64,000 bases of DNA from Saccostrea cucullata. Taxonomy: Eukaryota. This document shows positions 30,293 through 61,434 of the stretch, in pieces; position 1 is the stretch's first letter; each line of letters starts with the position of its first letter. The stretch is from positions 62,001 to 126,000 of the forward strand of contig NW_026929195.1 of NCBI RefSeq assembly GCF_032062105.1, written 5' to 3'. The notes under the pieces were generated by a model that worked only from the letters and a program-made list of their open reading frames with translations, searched no databases and was not told the origin of the DNA. Made by a program: the position numbers and the translations under genes.

Positions 30293-30744
30293 TTAGTTCC
30301 CCTGAATCAAGCCTGTCAAGAAACTGAGAAGCACTGCAAAAGGTGAAACATTTGCTCATTTAATTATTTTTCATTTTTTTCTTCTTTTGATGTAAAAAAA
30401 TATGTAGTCAATAAAAATAATTAATGAATTCACTATGCACAGAAAAAATAAATACTTCAACTGACATATCCTACTGTAGTAAAGTATTTTAGGAGTTTTG
30501 TTCAATTTCTGTTCTACATACATAAGACAAAAAACGGTGTAATTCCTTGGAATGGGTCCTCTTCCTCGTATAATGTATCAACTTGCATCTGAGCAATTGA
30601 GGGTGGAAGTCCCCCAAAGGATTGTCCATAGGGGGTAAAACTCGCTGGGGCAGCACCGAAGGAGTAGGGGGATTGTACCCCATAGTACGCAGAGCAGACG
30701 GCGTACAAAGACATAAGGAGGACTACACAAATTAACTTTGTCAT
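30293..30744 (-). CDS. Small secreted protein with a hydrophobic C-terminus (87 aa); diverged member of the cluster's gene architecture (gene E)
   Basis: Exons 30744-30522 and 30333-30293 (phase 1). Signal peptide MTKLICVVLLMSLYAVCSA; C-terminus EEEDPFQGITPFFVLLLLSFLTGLIQGN*. ATG directly follows cag; non-coding exon 1 donor caag|gtaa at 31025; 3'UTR intron 30282-25197. Confidence 0.8.
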
Positions 30745-31473
30745 CTGAAATAATAAGATATTGCAATATAATTAAAATTTTCAGTTTCGTATGTATTTTT
30801 TTAAATTCATATGTAGAATATTTCCTAGTACGCATGCATACAATCATGTTTTGCATTTAGTATGAAGGCGTGAAAATGAGATTTCAAAACACGTTATAAA
30901 CTTTTTTTTTTAATAATGACAAATTTTGACGATATCTTCAATTAAAATTTGATGAATAACTATGATTTATAATTCCTTTGAATTTGTTTTACCCAAACTA
31001 ACTTCAAATGTTCAGACCACTTACCTTGCGATATCTTTCTTAAAATCCAGTTGCAACCATTTCAAACTGTTTCCAGAAAACTTAACGAGCCAGTTACGCA
31101 AAAAGGGAACCCCTATTGCGTGATTTACCTTCTATTAGGCGTGATCTACCAGGAACGATTCGTTAACATAGTATTACTAAACACTCTATATGATATATAT
31201 ATTATGATATTAATGTGACCATATACACCGCTAATTACATCTTGATCACACTGTGCGTAATAAAACATTTTTATTAAGTCCACGTTCATAAGCGATGTGT
31301 CTCGCTATTTTTTTTAAGTTAGCCGAAAAATGATTTATATGTGTAAAACTTCATTTTAAATGTACATGTACACGATGTGTGCAATTTTTTTTTTTTTTTT
31401 TTTTTTGAAATATAAAAATTTCTTATTATTCTATCAATTTATATTTTATTTATTATACAGTGTACATGTATTC

Positions 31474-31885
31474 ATTTTTATGCCCCTCTTCGAAGAATGG
31501 AGGACAAATTGCTTTCCTGCTGTCTTTCGGTCGGCTGGTCGGTAAGTGTGTCCGTACACCAAGTTTCCGTTCATTTTCTTCACAAATGTTGCACATACTG
31601 AAATCAAATTTGATATACAGATTATCATACGAATACTAGTATATAGGTCAGGTTCTGTTTTAGGTACGATCAGGCCATTTTGGACAGAGTCATGTCTCCT
31701 ATATTTAGATATTTAGAAAAATTCCAATTATTTGCAGTTTCCGTTCATTTTCTTCGCAGAGGTTGCACATACTGCACATACTGAAATGAAATTTAATATA
31801 CAGATTTATCATTTGAATATCTAGGTCAAGTTCTGATTTTGGTACGATCGAGCAATTTGGGACAGAGTTATGTCACTTGGACTCA
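31474..31885 (+). mobile_element. Truncated HINE-like repeat with two internal units
   Basis: ttttatgcccctcttcgaagaatggagg start, a cggtcggctggtcggt microsatellite, and duplicated gtttccgttcattttcttc...gacagagt units. Confidence 0.55.
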
Positions 31886-33719
31886 GTTTTAATATATTCT
31901 TCACAAGCACTTCAACCAACATCCCTCACTGAATGTGCAGTTATTTAATGTATATACGAAGTCAACTACCGCGGTAAATGTGACCTTGGAAAACCCCACC
32001 CCACTCCCAATAGAAAATGCAGATCTTATTTAAAAATTGTTGTGAAAAATCATAGATACTAGTATATTAAACTTTAGGAGTCAAAGACTACTCACCCCAC
32101 TCCTCCACCCCCACGAATGAGGTTTTTAACTCTTGGGGAAGGAGATCACGTTTCATGACTGGGATCCCCCCCCCCCCCGGGAAAAAAATTTCATGGATAC
32201 GCGGCTTACAATTTATCTCATCTTCAAGTAACTTGTAGAATCAGGTCTCTTCAAATCAAGGTACCTGAACCTATAATAAGCTTATTTCGAGGGTCAAATT
32301 TTGAAATTAGAATGCACATACATACATAAGGAGAAAAAAATCTATGAAAAACTAAAAAAAAAAAAAAAAAAAGACACAGCTAGTCCTATTGATACACAAG
32401 GATTTTTTTTCCCGAATTTGTTCAAACAAAGAGTCGGAACAAAATAGGCTATCAACATTAGACATGAGAATGAATGAATATAGGAAAATATGAAAAAAAA
32501 TCTGAGGAAGTAATAAAATAGTAATACATAGTGCATGAATTATTCAAACCTTTATACTATAATGAAATAATAGACCTCAGGGTAAGGCTGGTCTTACTTG
32601 AAGGATTTACATGTAAGTTTTACGGTACCGTATATACGCGTATTTTTAAAATCTAATTTTATTGTACAGAGAAACATAAATGGTCAAGGTTAAATGTTAT
32701 AAATTAACAGAATATGTCCATAATATTCAAAAGTTTGTTTTGTACATCATGCAGAATATACTAGTAAAAAAAAAATCTTCGCGAATCTAAAAAAGATTTG
32801 AATGATACTGGTAAAATACACATTATATGACCCAACTTTCTTCCTTTTTTTCGATAAGTAGATTATTAAATACAGTCCTATAGAACACTGAGGACCACCC
32901 ATACCCCTTTATTTCAACATTTTCCAAGAATACAAGTTTTAATATTTTATAATTTTACTACTCTGTACAATTTCGCCAAGAAGAGACCCCCTAACTTTTT
33001 GTGTTGCTGGCAAATTCCAGTATTTACCGAAATATTTGAATTGCAACTCCCCACCAATTTTCCTCCAGATCCCCACAAAGTTTGAATAACCCAGCGGATA
33101 TAGGATTTAGAGTTTGAGCTTTAGTTTTCAAACACTATTCCCTGTCAGTATTTTTGGGGGGTGGGGTGAGGTCCCTCCCCCTTCCACTAAATTGCTACGA
33201 GCATTTTTATTCCCATTTTTCTATTCCCAAGAGAATAGATATATACATTGTAATATTTTTTAACTCTAGACATAACCAAATTCTATTCCTTTCCTAACTC
33301 CTATAGTGCCTGAGTCGTAGGTTCAGAACATCTAAATGACAAAATGAGGAAAAAGACATTGAATCATTGTTATAAATCATCAATGTTAAAGAAAGATAAG
33401 TAATGAAAAACTGAGAATTCATCTCTGGATCTACACTCCCAAAAAAAAAAAGTCATTTAATTTCCACATCTTCATGAACAAGATGGATCATTAACGTGCA
33501 AGGACACTTGACTCGGGAACAAAATGGACTGACAAGGAAATATGTTGGTTTTTTTTTATCCCTTCACAGTTGGTGGGGATGCAGTGACGCAGTCGTGTAT
33601 GTTTGTTTGTGCCGGTGAGTAGGTGAGTGAGTTAATGTAATGTACGAAACGGAACCGCGACGTAATTCACATCAGGATCAATGCCAGGTGCTGTTTTCAG
33701 TAGTGTATGTTCTTTGTTA

Positions 33720-34211
33720 GGGGCCTGTCTGTTGTCAACTTTAACCTTCGCCATAACTTTTGAACCGTAAGAGATAGATACTTAATATTTGGTATGCGTA
33801 CTCCACTTTATAGGCTCTTTCAAATGACACCAAGTTCAATGACCTTGTGACCTTGACTGTGACCTATATGCAAAAAATATCTTTTTTGAACTTTGGCCAT
33901 AACTTTTAAACCATAGGAGATGGAGACTTCATATGCATACTCCATTAATCAAGTTCTTTCAATAATCAAAGTCAATTACCTTGTGACCTTGATTGTGACC
34001 TATATGCTTAAAATAGCTTTTTTGAATATGGCCATAACTTTTGAACCATAGGAGATAGAGACTTCATATTTATATGCTTACTCGCCTAATCAAGTTCTTT
34101 CAATGATCAAGATCAATGACCTTGTAACCTTGACTGTGACCTATATGCTAAAATTGTTTTTTCGAACTTTGTTGCCACCGGGAGCATAGTGTCAAAAATA
34201 CATCTTGTTTT
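33720..34211 (+). mobile_element. HINE-like fragment with three ~140-bp repeats
   Basis: Three gccataacttt...gaccttgtgaccttgactgtgacct-like units followed by a ...catcttgtttt end. Confidence 0.6.
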
Positions 34212-34320
34212 GAAATTCAAACTGTACTTTAAAAAAAATAATTGAAGTTCTTGAAAAAATTAATGATAAATCAGGACTAGAGGTATGGCAAGCACTTTTG
34301 CTATTCATGAATTGTCAAAA

Positions 34321-34640
34321 TTTTATTAGTCCCATACCGGTGAAACCGGAGGAGACTATAGCTATATGTTTTTTTTTTCTAAGGCTGTCCGTCCGTCTGT
34401 TTGTCCCTTTGTCAGTCTCTCCCATTTGGGTTTCCACGTTTTTTTCTGAACACTTGCAGAAAATGAGCTGATTTTTGGTATGTGACTTGGCCAAGATGAG
34501 TTATAGAGCTAGTTTGCATTTCGTTCCGTTTTATGGATTTTTTACGGAATCATATCTGGCTTTTTCAAATTTTAACAGGAACCGTATTACTTTTGCTGGT
34601 AGGAGACTTGTACTGCTAATGCGATATGCTCAGAATACGC
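34321..34640 (+). mobile_element. Short HINE-like element
   Basis: T-run + agtcccataccggtgaaaccggaggagact IR, a gtcc microsatellite and a 3' aggagact subTIR. Confidence 0.55.
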
Positions 34641-35118
34641 ATTGAAATTGTGTGACATCAAAGATGACGTGCACTTAAAATATACGTTCTCTCAGAATAA
34701 AGGTTCTGATATATTCTATTCCGGTCCATTTTTCAGAGAAGAAATTGAAAAAAAAAATAACAATTTTCTTTCGTAATAGTGTTTTTATTTCAACATGTAA
34801 AAAAACAACAAATAAATAAATAGTTGAAGCTTGTTCCCCTTTGGCGACTCCAAAGTGCGTGGCAAAAACATCTGAAAATAAAAAAAAAGTTGTACAAAAT
34901 TATTCCTAAGGGCATAAATAAAGTTCTGCTGATACGTTCTTAATCTTGTTTGAGAGAAATAAAGTAAAACTTAATTATATAATGATCATTGAAATAATTT
35001 CCCACAGCACTACATGATACAACGGGTTACGGTAAATTTATATTTTCAGGCGAGTAAGGGGAGTGTTTAATTCTCTCACCTGTAAAATTGGAGAGGGGGA
35101 ATAACTTGGTTTCTGTAT

Positions 35119-35891
35119 TTAACCGGAGAGGTTAAGATTTCCGTTCAAAAGGAAAGGAGATAGGGCCAACAAAGCTGAAATAAACAAGATTGAAATCTCA
35201 TAATTTGGCGAAAAAACAGCATTTTTAATTTAATTCACAGTTTTGTAAAATATTTACATGTATATATAAATAATTACAGAATAAAACAAAGGTTTTAGAT
35301 GAACCTTCAATATTTTTTAAAAACTTTTTATATGTAAATGGATTATTCATTATTATTCATGCTATTTTGATTTAAAAATTGCATTCAGCGATATTTAGTA
35401 TAGTTAAAAGAACTTGCGATGAAAAATGCGTAATTCTTACCCAAAAGAGCACCGTTTCCTCCGAAAACTCCTTGGTCATTGTTATCCTCTAGACCCAGAC
35501 CCAAACCAATGGGGAGGGGAGCTGGCTGGACAGGGGCGGCAACTGGTGTGGGGACAGCATATGGCACGTAAACGGTCTTTGATTTCTTGTGTCCGTATCC
35601 ATGTCCGCTTGATCCGTATCCGGATAATTTGTGTCCGTATCCACTCATTCCTGTGCTGTATCCGCCATATCCTGTATCATATCCGCCCATTCCTCCGGCA
35701 TATCCAGCATCATATCCACCAATACCTCCGGCATATCCGGCAACGTATCCGGTCTGGTCGTATCCACTTGTGTATCCGGATGAGTATCCTGATTGATCGT
35801 ATGATCCGCCACTGGAATATCCGTAATCGGCGCGGACAAGTGCGACGCCGAGAACCAGAAGGGCAGCGAGAGAGACAGCTGAGGAACGCAT
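35119..35891 (-). CDS. Secreted Gly/Tyr-rich protein, FGGNG-tail family gene A (168 aa)
   Basis: Exons 35891-35441 and 35174-35119. Signal peptide, GY repeats, KKSKTVYVPYAVPTPV and DNNDQGVFGGNGALL|ALLALSPFLLNGNLNLSG*. TATA ~36153-36160, exon 1 donor at 36108, 3'UTR intron donor at 35080. Confidence 0.9.
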
Positions 35892-37756
35892 CTGAAAATG
35901 AAGAATAATTTAGAATGAAATACATGTCAAAACATTTTTAAAGCTGTTTCTGCAACAGTGTTTTCAAAACGATTTAAATAATTAAACATGAATGAGATTA
36001 AATAAAAAATCTCCCATATCCCTCAATAAACTGAAATAAGTCTTCTTTTCTGTATTACTGTATTTATTTTCTAGGAAAAAAAATCTGCTTTTTAATACGA
36101 GGTTTACCTTGAGTGGTCTGTGAATATATATTTTATAAAACTTTCCTCAAGCATTTATACTTTTAATCCTAGACAACTGTTATGATGTTATACGCAATCA
36201 CCAAACCTTTTTTCCAATTCATGTTACCTTGGGATTGACCTTACCTGACTTACGTAATATGTGTGTGCTATTGATTAGGAAGGAGGAAGTAACCGTATGT
36301 GTAAGGTGCCACTTCAAATCTTAAACTTCCCAAGTACATGTATTATCTTTGTTTTTATTAAAAAATGATTAAAGGATTTAAAGTCAACTGTGAAATGCTT
36401 CAAAGTAGTCCCCTTTTTTAACTTCTTGTTCTATATTGTAGTAAAAGTAAAACATGGACTAACCATGGACTTGACATTAATATACAAAATTAATATTTGA
36501 AGCTGTACATACATTTATAGCAGCAACAAAACGTTTTATATAAAACACTGTCATATACATATAAAGGTGTATTTTTTAATTGTTAGAAATACTTCCAAAC
36601 CGGTACTACTTTGTATTTTGTCCCCCCCCCCCTGTAATTTGCCCTTTTTGTTATTTTGTTCATTCCATTTTTCTCTTTTGTACATTTTTTCTTCTCTATG
36701 TTACTTTGTTCATTTTTGTCTGTGTTTTTTTTTCTCTTCTTTTGTACATTCTTTTATTATTACTATTTATATTGTACCTTGACCTAAATGTAGGGAGAGG
36801 GCTAAAATAGGCTGCGCCTGCTGCCCAATCCTCTTCACGATAACATAAGTGAATAAAATATTGTTAAAAAAAAGTAAAACAGATATTTTTCAAAACAATT
36901 TATTTAGCCAAAAAAGCACAATCAAAGGTCATTTAAGTGTAGTAGCTGGCAAGTTTTACCGGCTGTTTTACCAAATATTTAAGTTAATAAAAAGGGCAAA
37001 ATTATTTATTTCTTTAAACATTAAGGAACATGATACGTGTAAAAAGGATATTAATTAATAATAAAATGAATTAAAATGCGAATTTGATGTACGATGCATA
37101 CTTTTAACAATCAAATAAAATAATGTAATAGTACATTAAAAGTAAGTCGTTTAGTTTTTATACATTATCTACGTATTTTTCGCTCTTTTGAAAATTAAAA
37201 GTTCCACCCTTGACCAAACGAAAATCACCCCTTTCCCAAATTGATAAAAATTAAATAATTATTCTCCCAATTGAGAGGCACCGGATGAAACCTTTACGGA
37301 CACTATACACTCGAATAATTATTCATTTTATTTATTTATTTATTCATTTTTTTAGTAAGATAAAATTATATGGGACGAAGGAGCTGGAAAGATCTATTTT
37401 GAAATTAATTACAAGGAATTCATTTTCAATATAGTGAGCGCTTTTTTACTCGGGAAAAATCTTCAAAGACAATTGAGAAATGATGAAGAAAAATTGCCTT
37501 TGTTTACTCAAATGGAGAAAATACATGCAAATTAAGTTTTCCACGACTCTATCTTGATCCATCATAATGTTTCAATATTACAAGTATTTATTTTAAATTA
37601 TGACATAAGGTGCAGATAACAACACGTAGGTCAAGTGATGGTAATAATCAGAGCCAAGCTCCTTTTTTAAAAATGAAGTGATTTCCGTATTTTTCCTCTC
37701 CAGTTTAATAATTCGGAAAGTTAATATTCACGTTAGTTGTTCTTTCTTTAGGATCT

Positions 37757-37820
37757 CTATGACGACACAATATGATGACGTCACAATTAGTCAGCGGCGT
37801 CATAATAGTTGTTGGCTATC
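37757..37820 (+). promoter_or_regulatory. Triple CRE promoter module of MGRR gene 2
   Basis: TGACG 37760-37764, TGACGTCA 37776-37783, and CGTCA 37798-37802 followed by taatagttgttggctatc. Confidence 0.6.
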
Positions 37821-38138
37821 TTTTCATGCAAGTTTACCTCGATCTTTAAAGCAGTTTGACATTTTCCAAAGCAAATTCTGGAAATATCATTAAGGTAAGA
37901 TCCACACTTGTTTTAAATAATTTTTCTACGTAGCATGGGTTTTAAGAAGGAGACAATTTTTGAAAAAAAAATACATGTAGGACGTGAGAAACAATACTAA
38001 CAGTTCAAATCCGTAATGATTTTACATATTTACATTTCTCGTTTAGGGATGCTGGCATATATATTGTGTTCATATTTTACATTGATGAGAATAATAAAAT
38101 ATGTTATATGTATTATAATATAAACATTTTTCTTTCAG

Positions 38139-39104
38139 ATGGGACGGAGAGATAAAAAGAGCGATGACACTCTTTTTATTCATAGCAATATGTATAGTAT
38201 TATCCCGGACATACCAAAAGCAAATAGCATACAGCCAAGGGAAAAGATCCCTAGCATTCCCACAAAAAAGCTTCCTTCAAAGAGCAAACAGTATGAGGTC
38301 TTGCCTCATCTAGGAGAATTTGTGCCACCGTCTTTCTGCAACAACGCAACCAGATCTGCTCCGTGCATAGAATTAGAGAGGTTAGCTGAGCCAACAGCCA
38401 AAAAGTTGAGACCTCCCCTGGCTTGCCTTGATGTGGAGAGTATTAGGAAGAAGATCGACAAAGCTGAAAAGAAGCAGAAGAAAGCGAAAAAGAAGAAGGC
38501 AAAGCCTCCTCCAAAAGAAGTCTATGTGGAGAGGGAGAACCCAATGCAACAATTAATGGAACAATATATTAAGATGATGCCTCATGAAGTGCATATCCCC
38601 CATCCTCCTCTCTTTCCCCTAGATCCAACAATGCTGAGAAGAATAGTTAAGATAAAAACGCCGACGTCAGTAACTGAGTTGACTATCGAGCAGTATGTGA
38701 GCCTCGTGACCTCAGGGCAAGATCCTTTCTCGGCAGGAGATCCATCAGCATACACCAGTTATGCAAATCCAGAAGAATTCATTGGATACCCAGATCCACA
38801 AACTGGAGGTAGGCTTCCAGATCTCGGAGCATATATGGATTCCTTTCAAGGAGATGGATACATGAATCCACCAGATGTTTACCAAGATAACATAAATCCA
38901 GATAGATATGGAAATCCGGAATTTCCATCCGTGGCCGGGGGAAAGATGCCAGATATACATAAGAGTCGATTTGCTCCAAAGGAAATGTACGGAGGTGGCC
39001 GATTTACCGCTAACAGGGACTACAGAAACCAGTTTAACAACGCATCCCAGAAACCTTCCATGTCTCGCAATACTATTTCCATTGATAGCCGCATCACCGT
39101 ATAA
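38139..39104 (+). CDS. Orphan 'MGRR' family protein 2 (321 aa), single coding exon
   Basis: Long ORF with ATG directly after ctttcag. Non-coding exon 1 donor taag|gtaag at 37894. Paralogous to 8623-10032. Confidence 0.88.
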   Translation: MGRRDKKSDDTLFIHSNMYSIIPDIPKANSIQPREKIPSIPTKKLPSKSKQYEVLPHLGEFVPPSFCNNATRSAPCIELERLAEPTAKKLRPPLACLDVESIRKKIDKAEKKQKKAKKKKAKPPPKEVYVERENPMQQLMEQYIKMMPHEVHIPHPPLFPLDPTMLRRIVKIKTPTSVTELTIEQYVSLVTSGQDPFSAGDPSAYTSYANPEEFIGYPDPQTGGRLPDLGAYMDSFQGDGYMNPPDVYQDNINPDRYGNPEFPSVAGGKMPDIHKSRFAPKEMYGGGRFTANRDYRNQFNNASQKPSMSRNTISIDSRITV

Positions 39105-41037
39105 AAAACTCGACAGTTTTGAGCGGGAAAAATGCAACCAAATTTTTGTCATGATTTCAGAATACATTTATTTTTATACATTTCCGATGTGTATGATGCC
39201 GCAGATGCTGTAAAAAATAGTTATTGAGAATATACTTGTGTCTAAGAATGGATTTTTTGTCAGAGAAAATATTCCCGGGAGGAAAAAAAACCTTATTAGT
39301 CCGAGATTCGAGCCTCCCAACTCCCAAACCCATAGCCTGCATGGTTGAAGATAAGCACATTGTATATCGATCCGTCATGATCTTACGCGGTACTAATGAA
39401 AAATGTACTACATATATCAGGAACTGAATCGGCGGATCATGACTCAATAAAACTTCATCATTCTTCATGATCTTTGCGGGCAGTGCTTTACCGAGCTAAG
39501 AGCAGATCCATGGACACAGTTAAGAAATAGCATAAAATAAATAGTAAATTCTACGATGCTTTGTGCTTGCTGTTTCTTCCTATCGAATAAAATTAAATAT
39601 TGCATTTGAAAACCGTTTCTGTTTTCTTTTCATGTTTTTTTTTTAATTTATAGTTGTATGACATATTTATGAAAATTTTCTTATCAAAGTTTTTTTTTTT
39701 CAATTAAAAATCCAAAACTTGATTATACATTGATCAAGATATTATACTGGAACATAAATGATTTTTTTGAAAGAAATGTTTATACTGTAAGTAAATGAAT
39801 TTACTTACAGTAATCATTGGACTTTAAAAACAATTTATGAAAAGTTAAAGAGGAAAAGAGGATAAGTTGTGCAAGTGATTAAAAAACAAACGATCATCAT
39901 TATTTACATATATATATATACATGTGCATAAATGTACATATGCTGTATACATGTAATTAATTTCAATCGATTTCCCAGTGAAAGTGTTAAATTACATGAA
40001 GACTTGTATTGGTTGCAATAAAACACCCTGTATATCTCCTTATAACTCACCAGATGCATGTATTATACAATATCCTTGTACCACCTATGGTTAACACATT
40101 CTTGCACGCTAGGAGATTGAAACATATGCACGTCTTTTCCTAGTTCCTCTTTTGGCGCTTTGTCTTTTGGTAATTACATGTAGTTTCTTAATCAATACAA
40201 ACAATTATTTAGTATTACACATGGCCGTAGGAACCGAAGGGGATGGGGAGGGGGTGGTTGGTGGGCTCCAATAATTTCACCGGTGTGAGGATATTCGTTT
40301 ATTTACATTGGGAAAATTTATGAAAATTATGAATTCAATTTCTTATTCTTGGTCTTATATAATGATGAAAATATTTTAATATATTACACATGTTACAAAT
40401 CGTATAATTAACTGTAAATAAATTTTTTAAAAATTTACTCGTGAGGGCAGATCACTCTAACTGCATAAAACTACCCTGTAAGTAAAGCTCTCTATAGTGT
40501 GCAGTGTTTATATATAGCTTAAAAACCACCTAACAGGTGCCTCACCTATAAATTACCAATATAAGCTAATAAATGTAAATATAAAGAACCAGTGCTTTGT
40601 TTGCTGGGTGTCATAGTTGGAAACATCACGGTGGGATAATTTATTTATAAAAGGCTTTGCCTTTATGACAATATTGAATGACTGTACTAAAAATTGTAAT
40701 TTATGCGCCGATAAAGACAATATACTTCATTTACAACATAATAAAATCAAAATTTACTTAATTGGTAAACAAAATGTCTATTATCTGTCACCATCGCACT
40801 TATTTAATTAGAATTACTTAATAGCCATTTTACATATCAATTAATTAATCCAAGATCAGGCCCGGTTGGTGTTAATGAAAACATAGTTTACTCGCCTTAA
40901 TCAACTCAGTACTCAGTGTCAAGCAGCCAATGAGCGCCACTGAGTCACTAATTAAGGGAGATCACTCCATATAGGAATAATAAAGTGCCTTCAGGAGTCA
41001 GTGTGTGTGGAAGTTCAATGACTGGGTATTGTTAGAC

Positions 41038-42128
41038 ATGAAGGAGGTTTTACCAAGATATGCCCCCGGAAAACGGAATTACAGGGAAAGTCCCTCAAAA
41101 AGACGGCGGCTACGGGGCAGTCAGGACGAGGAACGAGAAAAGTTTTGGCAAAACTATCAGGTGAGAATATAAATTTTACGATCATTTAGTCTAGAATGTT
41201 TCGTCTTCCTCTTTATTTCCAAGTCTATTTGTAATGCATGGAACATGTCTTCTGTACAAGCTTGATGAAGTACATGTATTCATTAATTGGTGATATGTAT
41301 GTACTTATTTTTTAATTGTTCATGACATGAAACCTGTCCGTAATTAATTCAGACGTGAATGTGTAAAATTATTTCTTTATAAATGTTGTAACCCCCCTTC
41401 AAATACTAGTAAGTAATTAAATTAGTATGTACACTGTACTTATATTCTATTTTGTATGTATACATACATGACATAGAAACTGTACTACAGTAGCTGCTTA
41501 CCAGTTTTGGGGATTTACTTAGTATATATCGAGAACATCGGTCATTGTTTATTTAAAATTATTTTCTTTTTCATAGGTGTCCGCTAAAGAAAACACTCCA
41601 CCACCCGCAGAACACCCAAACTTCCGTTCTAACACAGAAACGCTGCCATTTTCACCGACTAGTGAAAACTCACGTGGCGACCCCCTACTACCCAGATCTA
41701 TTGAACAGTATTTCCTCCCCATTTCCCCCAAGGAAGAAAACAGTATTCTAGACGCTCCCAACAAAGAAAATAATATTCCAGACAAATCCAACAAAAAAGA
41801 GTTTAGTCAGCCTCTTTGTACTGACAAAGAAATTTATTTAGATCCAAGGGAACTCTCAAAGGATTCCGTGGTCCCATGTCATCTGGATTCGGAATCTTGT
41901 ACAAAAGGTGCGTGTTTTCAAGAACTTTCAGAAAGTTATCACAATATTTCTATGACCGAGGAATCAATGGAACAGGATATGTTGACAAGGATTATAGATC
42001 GCTCCCCCAGGAAGGTATTCCCTGGCAAAACAAAGACAAAGACCACGTCATTTCTATCCCTTCTGTGTTGTATACTACCTAACGATGACCATGTACTTAC
42101 TAGCAATGTGTATCGTCATAAAAAATAA
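41038..42128 (+). CDS. Uncharacterised 2-exon, largely disordered protein (224 aa)
   Basis: Exon 41038-41160 (MKEVLPRYAPGKRNYRESPSKRRRLRGSQDEEREKFWQNYQ, donor cag|gtgag) joins in phase 0 to 41577-42128 after a tttcatag acceptor. AATAAA overlaps the stop. Confidence 0.72.
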
Positions 42129-42833
42129 AGCATATTGAACAAATGGAAGACTTCGTTCTGTTTTGTCTCATGGATATGTTATATGAATGTGTAAGTGCAT
42201 TGTCACTGCCCAGGCATTCGTTGTCTGCATACAAAATTCAGACGTACTGGTTTACTTAATTCTTGTATTCCATTCTCAAATCTAAGACCATGTGAAAAGT
42301 GTATCCTCAAATTGTAATATATAACTTTTAATTATACATTGTGTATTTGAACTTGTAATTTATATTTAATTCACCTGCTTTACCTAAATATTTATGTCTT
42401 AATCAAACTGTTTCAGTTTTTTTCTGGACACATGCGTCCTGAACTAAGTTAAGTATACCTCAAAAGAATTTTCTTTTATAGACAAAAAAACCTAGCTGTC
42501 TAGTGTTAAAACATATTTATTTCAATATGTTATATAAATAAAAAAGCGAAAACAGTTCCCGCTGTCAACTCCGAGCTGCCACAAATATATCTACAAAAGA
42601 CAGAAAAAAAAATAAAGAAAAAGTTGGAAATTGATTTTTTTAAAAAAAAATCAAAGTTACATGTAGTTCTTTAAGCACAATTTCTAGCATTTAAGTTTTT
42701 AAAAAATCGAGCTAATTGTAACAAAGTGATTCCATTAATATTGATACATCAGAATATTAAAACAAAAATTCTTATGGTGTAATACCTTAATTTTGTTGTG
42801 ATTTAGGCAGGGGAGGTAACCGCCAGTAACCGC

Positions 42834-43536
42834 TTAACCTGAGAGGTTAAGGTTACCGTTCAGAAGGAATGGTGTTAGAGCTAAAAGAGCTGAAAATAAA
42901 GAATAAAAAAAAAAATTAAATTCATGAGCATATAATCTTAGACTGATTATAAAAATCTTAAAATTTGCATAAATTAATTCATAAATTGATTCTTTTTATT
43001 TTATATGGATATAAAAAGATTTTTATAAATATATTCTGATTTGTTACCAATCCTATTTTTTAAAATCACATAAAAGCAATCTTACCCAAAAGAGCACCGT
43101 TTCCTCCGAAAACTCCTTGGTCATTGTTATCCTCTAGACCCAGACCCAGACCAATGGGGAGGGGAGCGGGCTGGACCGGGGCGGTAACTGGTGTGGGGAC
43201 AGCATATGGCACGTATACGGTCTTTGATTTCTTGTGTCCGTATCCATGTCCGCTTGATCCGTATCCGGATAATTTGTGTCCGTATCCACTCATTCCTGTG
43301 CTGTATCCGCCATATCCAGCATCATATCCGCCAATTCCTCCGGCATATCCAGCGTCATATCCACCAATTCCTCCGGCATATCCGGCAACGTATCCGGTCT
43401 GGTCATATCCACTTGTGTATCCGGATGAGTATCCCGACTGATCGTATGATCCGCCACTGGAATATCCGTAATCGGCGCGGACAAGTGCGACGCCGAGAAC
43501 CAGAAGGGCAGCGAGAGAGACAGCTGAGGAACGCAT
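42834..43536 (-). CDS. Secreted Gly/Tyr-rich protein, FGGNG-tail family gene B (168 aa)
   Basis: Exons 43536-43086 and 42889-42834 (ALLALTPFLLNGNLNLSG*). ATG after tttctag, exon 1 donor at 43678, TATA ~43721-43730, 3'UTR intron donor at 42786. Confidence 0.9.
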
Positions 43537-48174: not shown

Positions 48175-48839
48175 TTAACCGGTAGTAGTAGCGGTGTTCT
48201 GGAGAAGGAGGGGCAACAAAACCAAGAGGACTGCAAACAAAAATGAGAATATTGATATATATTTATTTTAATTTAAAAAGTTATTCACCTTTGTCAAAAT
48301 ATATTTAATTTATTTTATTTCAATTGTCTTGCTTTTTAATTTTTTTTTTTCGTTATATGCTTTTATATTAAAGAGATATACATTTGCAGTGGTGAAAATA
48401 AGGAGTTGTTTTTCATTGATACGGATTAAATGAACTTACATAAAAGTCCAGCGCCGTTTCCGCCAAAGATACCGTTATTCTGGTTCTGTGTGTTGCCAAG
48501 AGCCAGCTCCAGAGGGATAGAAGGAGCAGCCACAGGAGGAGTGACTGGGGTGGGGACGGCGTATGGGATGTACATAGTCTTGCCGGATTTTCCCATACGA
48601 GCATATCCCATTCCGGATCCCATTGTGTAGCCTAGTCCTGATCCTACTCCCATGGCGTAACCAGTGGACAGTGGTCCGTAGCTGGGAGAAAATCCTCCTC
48701 CAATGTAGATCAAACGATCGTCATCGAATAGATCATCGTCAAATCTGTCATCGAAATCATCAGAAATAAAACCAATCTGGGCGTGGACTGCAGCCACAGC
48801 AACGAGAGCTAGAACGGCGAGAGTGACGAAGGAGCGCAT
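48175..48839 (-). CDS. Secreted Asp-rich + Gly/Tyr/Met-rich protein, FGGNG-tail family gene C (151 aa)
   Basis: Exons 48839-48440 and 48230-48175 (FLLVLLPLLLQNTATTTG*). Signal peptide, SDDFDDRFDDDLFDDDR, KSGKTMYIPYAVPTPV and [15 protein letters not shown]. Exon 1 donor at 49053. Confidence 0.9.
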
Positions 48840-50743: not shown

Positions 50744-51101
50744 TATAATGTGTAAATTATTTGAAATGACATAAAAATTATATTTCTTTTTTCAATTAAA
50801 ATGGGAAATATCAGTAGTAATTATCTATGCTTTCAAATAAGTCTATTTTGCAACTTGCAATTGCCTTAAACCAAAATTTAATGGTTTATGAAAACTGTGT
50901 CAGTGCATTGACAATATTAAATTAAAAACCTGTGTATGTTTCTATTAGTGAAATGATTCCAAGAGGTCTTATCACGCAGAGTTCCTGAATTAAAAACGAG
51001 ACAATGTCATATTAGATAACTAGCATTCGTGTTAGGGTCAATCTAGGTTAAATTCAAGTATTTGTTGATATATCAGATAGGAGACCTAAATTTTGACGAG
51101 A

Positions 51102-52196
51102 ATGGCTTTTAATGTGGAATTTTTATTAATTCTTTGCATGATGACGTTTGCACAGTCTAAGTCAATAGAAGACGAAGAAAACAATGCTTTCCTGTTGAAA
51201 ATTATTGAAAAGCACGAGCGAATGATAGCACGTCTTGAAGAGAAAATAGACAAACAGGACAGACGGATTTTTGAGCTTGAGAAAAATTGTGCGCCTCACT
51301 CACTAAAACTTTCAAAAACATTCCGTGAAGATTCCAAAAGTTCATCTCAAAGTGCAATATTGATAAATGAATCGGGAAAAGAGGGAAGTTTAAAGAACAG
51401 TTTCCTTCGATCAGTATCCCAGAGGAATAAAAGCAAAAGTATCAAAACGTTGGAAGGCAAGAAAGAGCGGCCCCGAAGGTTACTTCTGGGTATGTACATG
51501 TACACTTACATCAAAAGAGGAACATAATACTTCCCTCCATCCCCTCCCTTCCTTCTTTTAAATTTTGGAAGGTAAATGTAAAGGTAGATTACTTGATTGG
51601 AATATTGTAAATCATGGTGGCATTAAGCATCGATCCTGATGCAAATTACGTCATTTTATCACGCACAAAGGACAAACTAACCCATCCACAAACACATGCA
51701 CAATACTATTTACCCTCCAACTACATTACAAGGGGATAACAAATGGCATTTTTCCTTTGCAGGGTCAACTACAGCCCCATCAGTAGAAGACTCCGGGGCG
51801 GTAGGATTTTATGCATATCTTGGAGCTCATGATTCAACACCGGCAGCCAATAAAATGATTAAGTTTGACTCTATTAAAGTTAATGTTGGTAACGCTTACA
51901 ATCCCTTCAGTGGCGTCTTCACCATTCCCGAGGCCGGAGTCTATGTGTTTTCTTGGACAATCGAATGTGATGGCGGTGGAAGCATTTTCACCCAAATAGT
52001 TAAAAATAACGAATTTTTCGGTTCTATCGCATCCGATAGTACCCAGGAATCAGAATATCGCATGTCCACGGGCGTGGCCCTGACCTTGGCGAATAAAGGC
52101 GATATTGTTTTTGTTCGCGTCAATTATGTTCATGGTTCCAGAATTCACAGCTCTAATGAGGCGCGCTCTTCCTTTAGTGGCTGGAAATTAAACTGA
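51102..52196 (+). CDS. C1q-domain-containing protein 1 (signal peptide + coiled coil + globular C1q; 273 aa)
   Basis: Exons 51102-51489 and 51763-52196 (phase 1). gC1q motifs VGFYAYL, IKFDSIKVNVGNAYNPFSGVFTIPEAGVYVFSWT, LTLANKGDIVFV and SSFSGWKL. Confidence 0.93.
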
Positions 52197-52982
52197 TTGT
52201 GATGAAAAGATGAAAGTGTTATTTTCTGTCAGATAATTTTTCAAAGTTACTTTAAGAAAATAATAAATAATTCTACTTTAAATTTGTTTAGTTCACTTCA
52301 ATTTGTTTTCTTCTGATTTGGATGGAAAGATTGGTATATATTCATAGTAATATTGATTTTTTCATGTACATATCGAAAAAAAAAAGAGGCTAAAAGTTCA
52401 ATTCTCTTCAGAGCTTCTTTGTTTGCGTTTGCAGTTGCTACATGTATGCCCTTCCTGTCAGACGCAGCAGATTTATAGTATTTCATATAACTGGATTCTG
52501 TTTTGTATAAATATACCTTTAAAAATAAATGACAAGAACAGGAGCAATACTAGGCTTATTATATTGATTCAAAAAAGGGAAAAAACCCTTTATCTTTTAA
52601 ACGACAATAACGTCTGAAAACAATTGAAACAGTCATCTGTCATTTTAGGCTACTCATGTCAGAAAACACACAGACCTCTTCTTGTCTTTATTCTTTTGTA
52701 AGTGAAATTAAGTATGTACATTTACCGGTTTACATTGAATTTTAAGGAAATTCGTCTCCAAGATTAAATTCAAATGTACGCGTAGAGTTTGGTTGAATTG
52801 TTCAGTCCCCTTTGAGAATTTTTAGTGAAGATAATGATTTGCAACAAAATCTATCAGAGAACAAGGAAAATCACTTTGACGTGCTTTTGGACCGTGAAAG
52901 GGGCCAATGTTTGTTTAGATCCTGCTGTAATTTCTATGTTAATTTGGGGACCTTGAGAATTTTTCTTATTCCCGATACGATG

Positions 52983-55644
52983 TTTACTCAAGCCCTAGAG
53001 GGGCTTGAGTTATCTAAAACGATGCTAGGTCATCGATTTACTCAGTTTTAAAACACGAAAATATATTATTTTGGTAGATAAAAATATTTCTAGAAACAAA
53101 AATGAAGCTTATCCTGAAAACGTCTGTATATTCATAGATATTAAGTGTTAAATGTCGAATTCTTTTCTATGGCGAATGAACAATGAGTGAAGCCCCGCAG
53201 TCGCAACAGTTTCTAAACAGAGATTTCGCGCTTTCCTTTGCGTAGGAATCTCAGGTAACTTTCAGTCGCTGACGTTTCGGTCGCCGACAAAGCATCCTTG
53301 GACGAGTCCACTGGTGACTGTGAAAGGTGACGCAGGTTACCCAATCGTTAACAAATTCTACAATGAATGGCCAGAAAATGGATGGCTGTGCCCCCCCCCC
53401 CCATCTGATATTGTAACTCACTTGCCTGCAAATGATGTGTACTTTGAGTGACAATAAAATGATAGCACAAAATTAATGATAATTTCTCCCTCATGTACGT
53501 TTGTTTTTCTAAAAAATGGTATCATCGTCAGTTTGGTAATAGAACCTATGTAACTTCTTTTGGATTCGTACGGAATATGTATTGGACATGCCGCACAGCT
53601 GGATGAATCCGTAGTCACGTGGATTATTTGCAGCCCGCAGCCCCCCCCCCCCCTTTTGAAAAAACTTTTCTACAGGCTTGTAACAAGCTATTTGGATTGA
53701 TTAGTCAGCCCGCGGGCTGACTAGTTATGGTACGAAGAACTTCCAATGCGCTTGCGTGACCTGGAATTCTGGGAGTGGTTCTGCAGTAAATCACGCCTGC
53801 TAATTTTATTTCAGTAAAATCAATATAGATTGTAAACCAACAAATCCCTATTAAACACCAAAGTAATCTGTAAATTTAACTCAAAAAAGGAATTTCCCGA
53901 TGCTTATTTTTGTATAGAAGGTTTCAAAAGTTAACTGGTTCGCAGTAATTTAACTGGTTCGCACATGATCATGTGTTCTACGCAGCGAAGCATACAGTTG
54001 CTACTGTTGGATGAATTTAGTGTTTGACGCGTAAATTGAAGCTCTTTTATAAAATATATTGAAAGTATTTTTACTTATGTATTTAAATCTACAGTTCAAA
54101 TATTGGTTTATTACATATTTTTAGCTTTTCAGTTTTTACTGCTTTTACTTTCGTTTTCACTACAAATCATTTCGATCCCGATGCTAAATAGTAGACAGAC
54201 TTGTTAAGTCATACAACAGATACTTCGGAAAGAAAACACAACTGGCTAAGCTTGCTCGTTTGTTGCCTCCCGCTGAAATTAGAGAATATCAATTTCAGTC
54301 TGTCTGTCCGTCCATCTATAGTTCTGTCTGTCTGTAACACTTTCACTTCCCCGCAATATCCCATGAAGTCTGGTTACACATATGGCCTTTGGAAGACCCT
54401 CTTGATTTTGAGGTCAAAGGTCAAGGTATTAAATTCAGAAATTCTGTCTCTTAAACACTTGTTTTCGCGCGATATCTCTATAAGCCATTGAGCTTTTGCA
54501 ATGAAATTTTATACCACAACTCCCTATGGCCATATATATGGCGTTAGGAACATGAAGGAATACCCCTGTGTATTTGGAGTTCAAACGTCAGTGTCATAAA
54601 GTCATACTTCTGTGTGACTCTGTGTAAAACTTTCATTTCATTTCTAGTCAATATCTCAAGAAGGTTTTGAGTTTTTGCAATTAAATGTCATAAACCATAA
54701 TTCCCTATGGCCCCGCCCTGGACCCCCCCCCCCCCCCCTGATCTGCGCATGCTTTTTTTTATCCGTAAATTGGCTTGTTTTTTATATTCTACGACCTGAT
54801 AATCTAGGTTGTGGCAATCATATTTATGAATTAATAGGTTTATTATATTATAAGAGGCCTGATAAATGAATTTGTAGGTCTAAGTAATGTTTGCTTTATT
54901 TCAATTCTACTTTTTATGAAAAAATTTTAAGCCAAAATTCAGCTAGTTACTAGTAAGTCAAATGACGATAGTTAATAAACTAAAAAAAGTAGAAAAAATA
55001 TTAAGACGATGTTTTAATTTTAGTGCCCAACTCTGCTACTGATTAAAAAATTGTTGAAGGCATTTTTTCAGTTCTCTATGATTCTTTAAAACATTATCAC
55101 AGAGAAGAAAAATCCACTGGCTGACTCTCTAAGCTTTTTTTAAAAGCTAAACTTGTGTATATTAATGTTGTCATAGGCGTCGGAAGTAAACTGAAAAGGG
55201 GGGGGGCTAAACCAACAAAAACACGTAAACCCCAATTTTCAATGCCTATGTTATGTCTATCTTTGCAAAAAAAAAAAAAAAAAGCAGCCTATGGGTTTGA
55301 AATTAAGCAAAAAATCAAAAAAAAAAATGTATATAGTTTGAAGTATATTAAATGTCATGTATAAACAAATATTTCATTAAATTAAGAAACGGCAACTATC
55401 TTCTATAAAATATTCCTGAAAGTGTGTAACGTAAATTCATCTTAAAAAGTAGTACGATTAATTATATTTATTCTAATTAAATTCAATATATGAATTTTGT
55501 TTCATGTAAATGTATTTTATTCAACGGAAGATTGAACTCAATAGCCCTCATCTTATACCATTTTAGGATATTAATTAATGACACTTCCTAGCTGACTTTC
55601 TACAGCTTGAGTATCTCTGACGTTTTGTCAGTAAATACTTGTTT
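52983..55644 (+). mobile_element. HINE copy 1, interrupted by a nested HINE
   Basis: 5' tactcaagccctagaggggcttgag IR; 3' cttgagta subTIR + ctgacgttttgtcag hairpin + T-run. Nearly identical to 56586-57816 apart from the insert. Confidence 0.8.
53701..55155 (+). mobile_element. Nested HINE of a different family
   Basis: Absent from the sister copy. 5' tagtcagcccgcgggctgacta IR, gtcc microsatellite at ~54300, 3' ggctgact subTIR + agctttt/aaaagct hairpin. Confidence 0.78.
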
Positions 55645-56133
55645 GTTTTTGTATCAAAACTTTTAAATCATAATTCAATTATTCTATTGTAAATAGGAGA
55701 ATATTATTTAATGAAAGTATGGTTTCAACTGTGGAAAGAAATCAAAGAACTATGTCAGATATTAATAATTCATTTATTTATTCATTTTGGCATGTTTAAA
55801 TGCTAAAAATGCATATAATAATTGATAAAAACCTAGTTAAAAATAATAAAGACAATGGTAAAAACATTAGCCAGTTATTTTAGACATGCATGGAGCGGAA
55901 AATGTATTTTATTTCCTTAAATTATTTTTTTGAGTTGAGAGAAGCAAGAAATATGCTGTCTATGTTTTCAATAGAATAAGTGGTATGCAATTGTGTGCAA
56001 TACTGTCCTTAAATAACCTACTGTCTGATCTGATAAGATCATGCAGGTGACAATCTAGGTTAAATTGTATAAAATAGATAAGTAGTAGAAATCACAAAAC
56101 ACAAAGCCGTCAAGCGCATTTTATATTCTAAAC

Positions 56134-58343
56134 ATGAATTTATTTCTTGTGTATATATTGACAGTTTTTGTGACTCTTGGAACAGTAATTGGTGAGGATG
56201 AAAGTGCTACATTGCTGAAAATTATTGAAAAACACGAACTGATGATTCGACGTCTAGAGGAAAAGATAGATAAACAAGACAAAAGAATCGCTGAACTTGA
56301 AAGAGGATGTGATCATCGGGTGCAGAAAGTTTCGGATATCCATGATGCGGCCAATCCGTATGAAGATGAAGTGCATTATCATGGACGAAATGAAACGGAG
56401 AAACCAAGAGATTTGAAAAACACATTAAAAGCTGTGACTCCAAGGAAAAATAACAAAGGAGAGAATAACGTAGTCACCAGCAATCTGAAGCACCGAAGGT
56501 TTCTATTGGGTAAGTCTCAAGAAAATGACAACACAAAAGTAATATTAATGCAAGGACAAAGATGTTTCTAAATGGTTGTTTGCTTTTTACTCAAGCCCTA
56601 GAGGGGCTTGAGTTATCTAAAACGATGCTAGGTCATCGATTTACTCAGTTTTAAAACACGAAAATATATTATTTTGGTAGATAAAAATATTTCTAGAAAC
56701 AAAAATGAAGCTTATCCTGAAAACGTCTGTATATTCATAGATATTAAGTGTTAAATGTCGAATTCTTTTCTATGGCGAATGAACAATGAGTGAAGCCCCG
56801 CAGTCGCAACAGTTTCTAAACAGAGATTTCGCGCTTTCCTTTGCGTAGGAATCTCAGGTAACTTTCAGTCGCCGACGTTTCGGTCGCCGACAAAGCATCC
56901 TTGGACGAGTCCACTGGTGACTGTGAAAGGTGACACAGGTTACCCAATCGTTAACAAATTCTACAATGAATGGCCAGAAAATGGATGGCTGTGCCCCCCC
57001 CCCCCCCCATCTGATATTGTAACTCACTTGCCTGCAAATGATGTGTACTTTGAGTGACAATAAAATGATAGCACAAAATTAATGATAAATTCTCCCTCAT
57101 GTACGTTTGTTTTTCTAAAAAATGGTATCATCGTCAGTTTGGTAATAGAACCTATGTAACTTCTTTTGGATTCGTACGGAATATGTATTGGACATGCCGC
57201 ACAGCTGGATGAATCCGTAGTCACGTGGATTATTTGCAGCCCGCAGCCCCCCCCCTTTTGAAGAAACTTTTCTACAGGCTTGTAACAAGCTATTTGGATT
57301 GATGTATATTAATGTTGTCATAGGCGTCGGAAGTAAACTGAAAAGGGGGGGGGGCTAAACCAACAAAAACACGTAAACCCCAATTTTCAATGCCTATGTT
57401 ATGTCTATTTTTGTAAAAAAAAAAAAAAAGCACCCCCCCCCGGTTCCGACGCCTATGGGTTTGATGTACGTTATTAAGCAAAAAATCAAAAAAAAAAAAT
57501 GTATATAGTTTGAAGTATATTAAATGTCATGTATAAACAAATATTTCATTAAATTAAGAAACGGCAACTATCTTCTATAAAATATTCCTGAAAGTGTGTA
57601 ACGTAAATTCATCTTAAAAAGTAGTACGATTAATTATATTTATTCTAATTAAATTCAATATATGAATTTTGTTTCATGTAAATGTATTTTATTCAACGGA
57701 AGATTGAACTCAATAGCCCTCATCTTATACCATTTTAGGATATTAATTAATGACACTTCCTAGCTGACTTTCTACAGCTTGAGTATCTCTGACGTTTTGT
57801 CAGTAAATACTTGTTTTTTTTGTTTCAATGGCTTTTATTAATATTGTTAAAGTGGGTTTGAATTTTATAGTCGAATGTAGTATATTCAAATCCTCTTATT
57901 TTATTTTTGCAGAAACTCCAACGCCCTCAGCTAAAACATCAACTGTCATAGGTTTTTACGCATATCTCGGAACTCACGATTCTTCGCCAGCCCCCAACAA
58001 AGTCATCGTATTTGATACCATCAAAGCAACCTCTGGTCACGACTATAACCCCTACAGCGGAATCTTTACCATTCCCGAAAGTGGGATGTACGTCTTCACT
58101 TGGACGATCGAATGCGACGGAAATGGCCAAATCTTCACCAAAATCGTAAAGAACTCCAGCGTATTTGGTTCCATTGCGTCTGACAGCAACCATGAAATAG
58201 AGTATCGCATGTCAACCGGTGTAGCATTGACTCTGGCAAATAAAGGCGATATTGTATTTGTTCAAGTGCACAGTGCACAGAATACGAAAATTCATAGCTC
58301 CGATTACGCAAGATCTTCATTCAGTGGCTGGAAATTAAATTGA
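56134..58343 (+). CDS. C1q-domain-containing protein 2 (signal peptide + coiled coil + globular C1q; 268 aa)
   Basis: Exons 56134-56509 and 57913-58343 (phase 1). Paralogue of gene 1 (LLKIIEKHE.MI.RLEEKIDKQD.RI.ELE; closely similar gC1q). Confidence 0.93.
56586..57816 (+). mobile_element. HINE copy 2 in the intron of C1q gene 2, containing a small MITE (57320-57457)
   Basis: Same termini as 52983-55644. MITE TIR cataggcgtcggaa / ttccgacgcctatg. Confidence 0.8.
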
Positions 58344-60420
58344 TTAAAAATGTAAAATGTTTGTTTGATTTTTTTAAAGCTTTTGCTTTATTTGTGCATG
58401 TATAGTTACAATTGCAAACTGTGATTCTGATATACTTTTCACTCAGACTCTGTCATAACATTCAAATTAGGCCCTTTAAGAGAATGCTTATGGAACCACG
58501 ATAATAAAATTTTAAAAAATTTAAAAGGAAACAGTGCTATTCCAAGAGAGTGTATTATTTTATTAATGCCTTTTACTTATCTGACCAATCTAGATTTTAA
58601 TTAGTACAATTTTTTTTACGTTCCTTAATATTTTAATTATTCAATATTAGAAAACCTACCGGTACTTTTAGAGGTTCAACCCTCAGCAATACTTTTGATA
58701 TACTGAACGAATGTTCATATGCAGTTTCTAATTCGATTGTCATTTATTTAGCTTAAACGTTAATTATGACCCGGAAGCTTTGCAAGATTAGAGTTTAGAG
58801 CTTGAAATGTAAGTTATATACCAGTATGTATGATAAATAAAGCAACCACGAGGTAATATAGATAAACTAAGATTTCTTCAAATAGTTCATGATACTGCAG
58901 ATTATTGTGCATATTCATCCATTCAATAGTAACTGTTTATGTTAATAAATTAAACCTTAATTGATGCACTCAATAATCATTTCTCTTCTTTTCATGTAAG
59001 AAGTATTTTATTCATAATATACAGAGAAGTGTACAATATGAATATGGATTGAACAGCAGGCCAAGGGCCTATATAAGTTCTCTCCATTTGTGATCAAGGT
59101 ACAATTAAATTACTGTACATATTTTTAAGTTCCACAAAACATGTATTATAAATTAATATTGAAAGTATTATAAAGAGTACATAATTGAAGAAAAATTGAG
59201 GGAAAAAAGTGCGTAAAGAAAACAATAAAATAAATATAAAACAAAAAACAAATGATGGAAAAAACAAACAAACAAAAATTTAAGTAATAAGAATATGGAG
59301 AGGAAGGTTCAGACCCATACTTGTATGTTTATGTGTACTTTCAACCTAAAGGTCAAGATTGAAAGACATGCTGCACATTATTTAATATATAATATATCAT
59401 TTCTCTTCAAGTGAAATACTGATATAAAATAACACTGATGCCCACAGTAATTCATTGGAAGAGAGCAATTTAATTCAATTAATGCATGAATTAAATATAT
59501 AGCATTATCTGCTTTCCTACATGTAATTTGAATTACTGAGCTCGTCAGTTCAGTTGTATTAAGAATGTAACAAATGTAAGTGTAAAATAATTCGTACTAC
59601 CTCTCTGGATATATAAATTCACTAGTGGAACACATACTCAATGGAAAAAAAAAACATTTGATATCATTGAATAAAACATATCATAATTGTACTACATTAA
59701 AATATCAGAAGGAAGTGAATTTCTCAAAATCAATTATTTAAACAAGATATTGGTACATGCATTTCTTTCTCTGAATTCAACTATAACATTTCTTCAAATT
59801 AAGCGCTTTAAATAAAGCAATTTTCTATTAATATTAAAAGAAATTCTTCTTTACAAAAACCTTTCCCCTCTATATTTTTGTGATGAAATGTGATAAGATG
59901 CATGTATATGTTAATTATCAGCCATAGGATATAATAATTATTTAGTCAACATGGATGATTAAACAATGGAATTAATATTAATTTTAATCAAGATAAAATT
60001 TAAAAGTCATAAATAAAATGTTTTATTAAAAAAGTGTTAAAATAATACATGCACTTAATGCCCCAAAGATATTTTCACCTGGGAAATAATAATTTAAGTC
60101 ATCTTTTAATTCTATTTTCAATATGACGCTACAATTGACACGTCGCATTGGTTCTAATCGACCGAACACCTTCATCAAGCTACTAAATAAGTATATGAAT
60201 GGATAAATACATAAATAGATAAAATAATTAATGATAATTATGACAAAATAAAAAGTTTGTATATAACAGTTTTACTCCATGTCGTACCCAAATATAAGAT
60301 TTTTGCCGTTTAGAATTGCCAAGAAAGAAAGAGGAAGGCATGTCGGCCTTGGCTGTCTGATAGTTACATAAAACCTACACCTGTTATAATTTGAAGGAGA
60401 GTACTGCAGTATTACGCCAT

Positions 60421-60514
60421 GTTGTTACGTCATTTTACTCTAGAGTCCCCTATATAAAGGGAGACTAACAAGTTTTCTTCAGTGTTCCACTCATACAAAC
60501 CTAACAGACAGAAG
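60421..60514 (+). promoter_or_regulatory. Core promoter and non-coding exon 1 of gene D
   Basis: TTACGTCA 60425-60432, TATATAAA from 60451, Inr-like TCAGT 60479-60483, donor gaag|gtaag at 60514. Confidence 0.7.
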
Positions 60515-60750
60515 GTAAGCAAAGCTAACTCCCCAATATTTTCTTAAGATAAGGACCTACATTTTTACAAGTTCTTAAACAGCCAACTTTTATTTTCAAA
60601 AAAAAAAATGAAATGAATAAATAGAGGAAAATTTAAATATATACATGTAGAATAATATACAAAATCCTCATAGGTAGATTGCATAGTAATTATTTTTTGC
60701 AATGTTTAGAATAGTTGAACTTCAATTTGATTAATATTTTTATCTTGCAG

Positions 60751-61434
60751 ATGCGTTCATTCGTCGCCGTTGCAGCAGTTATGATGGCCGGTATTGCCGT
60801 TGCCATGGCAGAGGGATACGGTAGCAGCTACGGTAGCAGTTACGGAAGCAACTACGGAAGCAGCTACATGTCTTATCCTAACTACGGATACGGAAGTGGC
60901 TACGATACCGGATACGGATACGGAAGTGGATACGGACACGGAAGCAGCTACGGCAGTGGATACGGAAAGGGATACGGAAAGAAAGGTGGTGTACAAGCTG
61001 TTTATTACCCAGTCCCTTACCCAGTCCAACAGCCAGCTGCAGCTCCCCTTCCCCTGCCCCCAATTGGTCTTGGTGCCGGTTTGGCCGCTGCTGACAACAA
61101 CGATAACGGTATCTTCGGTGGAAATGGCATCGGACTTCTCGGTAAATGAAGATTTCCTATTAACTTAAAATTGATTTTTGAAATATTTTAATTTTTTTTA
61201 AACAAATCTTTTTTTTCACCATCAGCTAACAATTAGATATCCAACACAGAAGCAATCAGAATATTAGAACATTTTATGTATTTTTTACAAATATTTAATA
61301 TTTTAAACAATAATTCTATATATTTTGTTGTGATATTTTGTGTCATATGAATTTATAGTATCTTCTTTCATTCCTTTTTAGCTCTTCTTTTCCTGATCCC
61401 TCTGCTTTTCAACACCAACACCACCACCGGTTAA
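60751..61434 (+). CDS. Secreted Gly/Tyr/Ser-rich protein, FGGNG-tail family gene D (147 aa)
   Basis: Exons 60751-61141 and 61382-61434 ([17 protein letters not shown]). Signal peptide, YGSS/GYG repeats, [16 protein letters not shown] and [16 protein letters not shown]. Confidence 0.92.

Follow-up and report, generated by a model that had tools for sequence, protein, structure and literature searches.

The window, a 64,000-nucleotide stretch of the Saccostrea cucullata genome, carries four genes, designated A to D, that share a common layout of signal peptide, variable low-complexity block, Y-V-P/Pro linker, G[IVL]FGGNG motif, phase-1 intron and Leu-rich tail exon. These genes and the features discussed alongside them are listed below by position in the window.

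30293-30744, minus strand: gene E, predicted (exons 30522-30744 and 30293-30333); signal peptide, Pro/Phe/Gly-rich sequence and hydrophobic tail, with exon phases as in A to D
34769-34871, minus strand: gene A last exon, 3' UTR only; contig piece 34769-34818 joined to 35080, start at 34871 predicted from the acceptor
35080-35174, minus strand: gene A tail exon; coding part 35119-35174 with Leu-rich core containing Pro, Asn-rich end and Gly-stop, then about 40 nt of 3' UTR; contig joint 35174/35441
35441-35891, minus strand: gene A main coding exon; signal peptide, Gly/Tyr block (27% Gly, 14% Tyr), basic patch, Y-V-P/Pro linker and motif (35451-35471); seen in a transcript contig
36108-36160, minus strand: gene A TATA box (~36159) and short non-coding first exon ending AAG/GT at 36108; predicted, resembling the loose contig end behind 35895
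42834-42889, minus strand: gene B tail exon (coding part); splice consensus, 93% identical to the annotated S. echinata tail exon
43086-43536, minus strand: gene B main coding exon; 97% identical to A, motif 43096-43116
48175-48230, minus strand: gene C tail exon (coding part); present in RefSeq model XP_062618469
48440-48839, minus strand: gene C main coding exon; signal peptide, Asp/Phe-rich then Gly/Ser/Met/Tyr block, motif 48453-48473; RefSeq XP_062618469
51102-52196 and 56134-58343, plus strand: two coiled-coil + C1q genes between C and D (Pfam C1q E=2.9e-21); a synteny marker, not part of the family
60751-61141, plus strand: gene D main coding exon; signal peptide, Gly/Tyr/Ser block (26% Gly, 16% Tyr), GKK patch, motif 61108-61128
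61382-61434, plus strand: gene D tail exon (coding part); splice consensus, orthologous tails in three other oysters

The motif G[VI]FGGNG occurs four times in the six-frame translation of the window, once in each of genes A to D, and was absent from 200 shuffles. Each gene has a single main coding exon of 130-150 codons beginning at AG/ATG, followed by a phase-1 GT-AG intron of 266 (A), 196 (B), 209 (C) or 240 nt (D) and a tail exon with 56, 56, 56 or 53 coding nucleotides, respectively, which ends in GGT TAA in all four cases. The coordinates, strands, signal peptides, motif, phase-1 introns and 53-56-nt tails given for A to D in the original prediction were correct, and its picture of a variable block joined to a constant C-terminal module was upheld in oysters and a scallop, making the arrangement older than the window alone shows. 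The expectation of a Gly/Tyr block in all four genes held for A, B and D (26-27% Gly and 14-16% Tyr in the main exon) but not for C, whose block is Asp/Phe-rich and then Gly/Ser/Met-rich with only 6% Tyr, class C beginning with Gln after the signal peptide. Past the signal peptide, the main exons lack Trp and Cys and contain 2-3% Lys.

Several other features of the locus were noted. A short predicted non-coding first exon ending AAG/GTA, with a TATA box about 50 nt before it, lies upstream of A, C, D and their orthologues, and candidate bZIP-like TTACGTCA/TTACATAA sites were seen upstream of several genes, clustering upstream of D in four species. Cryptic GTs precede the real donors in A-type genes and in C. 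virginica D. Two paralogous ORFs of 469 and 321 aa (8623-10032, minus strand, and 38139-39104, plus strand) start with MGRR, are Pro/Lys-rich, belong to no Pfam family and have proteins present exactly in NCBI/UniRef; the former contains a 28-aa tandem repeat (84 bp x 4.7), and the latter is transcribed and 70% identical in S. echinata. Between A and B, on the opposite strand, lie exons of a multi-exon gene (40774-42245, plus strand) whose sequence is conserved in S. echinata, in a gene encoding 236 aa (L007 13028-16430), and positions 2627-6481 hold about four tandem copies of a 1.2 kb unit with repeated identical ORFs of 84-90 aa, probably a repeat element.

A transcript-type contig from run X1, a run assigned to RNA by guess but whose contig is spliced, skips exactly positions 35175-35440 of gene A, a 266-nt interval bounded by GT-AG on the minus strand, and continues into the further 3' UTR exon, while its loose 5' end resembles the predicted non-coding first exon. 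At 85-99% identity, these reads and contigs must derive from other individuals or related lineages. Two oligo-dT libraries placed only few reads on gene A (depth up to ~6), indicating low expression in those two libraries; this low depth, together with high depth in one contig set, fits restricted expression. The proposal that the tail exons are spliced in is thereby borne out for A by the transcript contig and for C by the RefSeq protein XP_062618469, which includes the tail, and for the B and D junctions in S. cucullata it is supported by splice consensus and orthologue models with the same tail rather than by reads. Among the 18 genes examined, all 18 encode a terminal Gly, with three different codons used in the scallop, and codon differences between orthologues in the tail core are mostly synonymous (for example 6:0, 6:1 and 5:1). 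The tail is spliced in and under purifying selection.

Profile searches of the 1.17 Gb S. cucullata assembly (23,869 contigs) recovered five members: A to D and a further gene, F, which lies outside the A-D contig on contig C1169, has the same intron and tail, and together with A, B and D falls within 26-30% Gly and 14-16% Tyr. Window gene models were searched exon by exon, and whole proteins served as queries only where the database entry carries the tail. A profile of the main-exon module gave nine matches among 1.84 billion representatives, comprising seven oyster-type proteins, one metagenomic protein (P0010) and one chance match. The latter is how we treated P0008, a repeat protein of 1891 aa. 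P0010/P0030 (ENA ERZ26168041) is a divergent member from a metagenome with a splice-like end as in the family, and is absent from the S. cucullata genome. When the profile was instead made from tail-bearing database proteins, a scallop protein joined the matches at E=0.93, which on inspection has an acidic start, a Gly/Tyr block, PYAVP, GIFGGNG and a Leu-rich tail; in the scallop genome it is present as three tandem copies with the phase-1 intron of the oyster genes and terminal Gly codons GGT, GGG and GGA. Judged by these sequence features it is a true family member despite its E value. No mussel or pearl-oyster member was among the matches.

Four other oysters, S. echinata, C. virginica, M. 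gigas (orthologues LOC105342070 / XP_011447198 / K1RBZ9 and A0A8W8ITI1) and O. edulis, also have gene clusters of the family, and in C. virginica and O. edulis the orthologues adjoin a C1q gene as in S. cucullata, with one copy at the corresponding place. Given that members occur in both oysters and a scallop, the distribution dates the family to before the oyster-scallop split, which is Palaeozoic. Database names of members ("uncharacterized", "keratin-associated protein 6-2-like", "sulfur globule protein CV1-like") reflect composition, and an unspliced read-through of F is labelled "shematrin-like protein 2" in RefSeq. In the O. edulis C orthologue (L045 10001-10640) the DNA contains an in-frame tail exon that the RefSeq model omits by way of another acceptor. 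A predicted secreted protein elsewhere in the assembly (L006, G000:C21132:65057-68143; E=6.5) has a region that by eye resembles a chitin-binding/LPMO-type domain, and after it a stalk of Thr/Pro, a hydrophobic Gly/Leu stretch and GYGK repeats, building blocks similar to those of the Gly/Tyr family in a different order.

The main exons of A and B are 97% identical whereas their tail exons are 80% identical; B and its S. echinata orthologue, by comparison, share 87% of the main exon and 93% of the tail exon. Because of this reversal, the sequences point to recent gene conversion between older duplicates that was limited to the main exon and left the tail exon and flanks unhomogenised. Block classes A/B, C, D and F are each kept between species, and the block differences amount to ordinary paralogue divergence. 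Exon shuffling of a "cargo" was rejected, as signal peptide, block and motif lie on one exon. The notion of interchangeable cargo was overstated for a few orthologous classes conserved between species, and "system" was likewise too strong a term for a gene family whose locus contains no dedicated enzyme.

Gene E had been described as a similar gene, and it does share exon phases and a hydrophobic tail with A to D; sequence comparison, however, did not support its membership. It lacks the Y-V-P linker, the G[IVL]FGGNG motif and the terminal Gly, ending instead in Gly-Asn, and it gave no match in family profile searches, with an hhalign probability of 0.4%. Genome and database searches found it as a single copy with no relative. 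We accordingly rejected gene E as a demonstrated member; either strong divergence of a paralogue or an unrelated origin may account for it.

On sequence grounds, the family is best read as small secreted, intrinsically disordered, amphiphilic block polymers of pteriomorph bivalves, with members in oysters and a scallop. The C-terminus follows a conserved order of G[IVL]FGG[NS]G, a 12-14-residue Leu-rich segment with Pro, an uncharged Asn/Thr end and the terminal Gly, and AlphaFold2 predicts a disordered chain (pLDDT 51) with only a signal helix and a tail helix split by Pro. Our favoured interpretation, to which we assign a probability of roughly 45%, is that these are secreted low-complexity structural proteins that a retained hydrophobic tail anchors or assembles. 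The mature protein would retain the tail, as a short and kinked hydrophobic helix through which the chains, while being secreted, pack against each other or against a membrane or lipid surface; the Y-V-P stretch would act as a stiff or beta-type spacer and the Gly/Tyr arms would form the bulk of an extracellular layer in which, by analogy, Tyr cross-linking is possible. Class C would contribute an acidic arm that possibly binds Ca. Known matrix proteins suggest, by analogy, mantle or foot secretion as the likely site, leading to shell organic layer, periostracum or cement; cross-linking through Tyr and any part played in shell, periostracum or cement are analogies only. Bivalve matrix proteins include other secreted, low-complexity Gly/Tyr chains that each carry the C-terminal signature of their own family (PMC3896809, PMC9210306), so the design is a known one. 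Across the A, C, D and scallop classes, identity over the last 30 residues is 53-67% compared with 29-52% for the signal peptides, and although Leu/Gly bias inflates the tail figure, the tail identity is more than would be expected for a disposable signal; the anatomy of the tail makes a membrane-anchoring or assembly role plausible. Points against this reading are the fairly good fit of the tail to a GPI signal, the few Tyr in C, the loss of the tail Pro and the first motif Gly from the O. edulis C copy, and the failure of motif searches of papers and of shell-proteome supplements to find a family member.

The first of these points concerns a close rival, which we regard as a realistic though minority possibility: the last 28-30 residues may be a cleaved GPI-attachment signal, with cleavage after the Asp or Asn two residues before the first Gly of the motif, so that a GPI-anchored, disordered Gly/Tyr chain would remain at the apical cell surface, held on a Pro-rich stalk, and could later be shed. 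The published GPI pattern comprises an omega residue of A/C/D/G/N/S, a small omega+2, a spacer of 8-12 and a hydrophobic tail of 15-20 residues (PMC9098846). Consistent with it, Asp or Asn occupies the candidate omega site in seven of eight natively spliced database proteins and also in A to D, Gly is always at omega+2 in these, and no charge follows omega+2. The spacer fits in part, having 8-9 mostly small residues that are Gly/Asn-rich but include two hydrophobic ones. The hydrophobic core is 12-14 residues long and is followed by 6-8 uncharged, mostly polar residues; a core Pro or a short polar end also occurs in the signals of PLAP, Thy-1 and CD59. The omega residue is Gln in the C orthologue of M. 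gigas, as it is in similar sequences on Logan contigs that carry no label, and one O. edulis C allele has Asp at omega+2. Furthermore, GPI signals have no sequence consensus (PMC9098846), whereas here a fixed motif and terminal Gly persist from oyster to scallop. The retained-anchor and GPI readings both amount to a tethered Gly/Tyr protein, which was the core of the original prediction. A more specific version, which we consider unlikely, holds that the tail is a sequence-specific C-terminal sorting or anchoring signal kept across pteriomorph bivalves that would tether disordered Gly/Tyr proteins to the apical membrane, through GPI or dedicated processing, and template a cross-linked organic layer; such a role, if true, is without description for known shematrin-type proteins.

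The invariant terminal Gly, together with basic residues ahead of the module, would also suit a precursor in which a cut at the basic patch frees a hydrophobic C-terminal peptide of 55-65 residues that is amidated via this Gly and acts as a surfactant-like or membrane-active agent; a terminal Gly is the substrate of peptidylglycine amidation. The basic patch proposed as a common element is not constant: G-K-K or H-K-K lies ahead of the module in A, B and D and in a single scallop copy, whereas C, F and the other two scallop copies lack a dibasic site. Antimicrobial peptides differ from the predicted product, which would be uncharged or acidic, and the N-terminal blocks are conserved within classes, unlike spacers. 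We find this scheme improbable. Similarly doubtful is a single-pass, tail-in membrane protein with the Gly/Tyr domain luminal: the best 19-residue windows reach Kyte-Doolittle values of 1.8-2.3, but these top windows contain GGNG and a Pro, rough summed Hessa-scale values range from -0.3 to +2.6, and no basic stop-transfer residues follow the segment.

Searches of Pfam, NCBIfam, PDB sequences and the ESM Atlas assigned the Gly/Tyr members to no known family, and a JGI metagenome scan gave no match. Collectively, the family-profile check proposed at the outset returned relatives in oysters and a scallop and matched no characterised family. Literature searched by motif and locus id, largely outside subscription journals, contained no mention, and the Lottia and Pinctada shell-proteome supplements searched by motif contained no family member. 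Provisionally, the family is apparently undescribed in the literature covered.

Known bivalve Gly/Tyr matrix proteins are fast-evolving, poorly alignable between genera and basic at their ends. The present family can be traced from oyster to scallop through a 55-70-residue module and a conserved intron, which provides an old, alignable handle on the Gly/Tyr class. Should the tail be an anchor, it would be relevant to the way an epithelium holds secreted framework proteins during matrix formation. Automated annotation masks the family through composition-based names and a tail exon that is sometimes dropped, as for member F and O. edulis C. Bivalve genomes contain many unannotated low-complexity secreted families, which tempers the weight of one more whose function is predicted only.

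Among known systems, insect chorion, low-complexity cuticle, keratin-associated and sulfur-globule proteins set Gly/Tyr arms beside a conserved V/Y/P assembly segment, a likeness of composition only that is mirrored in sub-threshold compositional matches to Chorion_2 (E=0.21) and SGP (E=0.09). Bacterial GlyGly-CTERM proteins, the rhombosortase substrates, likewise place Gly-Gly ahead of a Leu-rich C-terminal helix, but the family lacks the basic cluster after the helix (no K/R past omega+2), and no NCBIfam match was found at E up to 10. GPI-anchored proteins share the signal peptide and small-residue site and broadly resemble the family in having a spacer and an uncharged C-terminal hydrophobic stretch; the family differs by its short core, polar end and unusual conservation. 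Prismalin-14 and MSI31, acidic Gly/Tyr framework proteins compared here by description, resemble class C and the scallop copies, which likewise join an Asp/Phe-rich N-terminus to a Gly-rich block. Prismalin-14 has PIYR repeats, an acidic C-terminus and no Leu-rich tail; PIYR was absent from the translations.

The nearest comparisons are the KRMPs and the shematrins. KRMPs are alike in small size, secretion, a Gly/Tyr block and a short conserved C-terminus, and differ in the Lys/Trp domain after the signal peptide (0% Trp and 2-3% Lys here) and the RKYKY-type C-terminus, both absent from the family. Shematrins, which belong to the prismatic-layer framework of Pinctada, are alike in signal peptide, G(n)Y block, small size, tandem paralogues and a constant C-terminal signature, and the signal peptide and G(n)Y domain typical of them are found in A, B, D and F and only in part in C. 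As originally noted, shematrins end instead in a basic RKKKY/RRKKY-type motif (PMC3896809), whereas all spliced family ends are uncharged and finish in Gly, and the RefSeq "shematrin-like" label on F most likely mirrors composition. With neither a basic C-terminal motif nor a Lys/Trp domain, the oyster and scallop family falls outside both the shematrins and the KRMPs; by analogy, it probably works as these two groups do.
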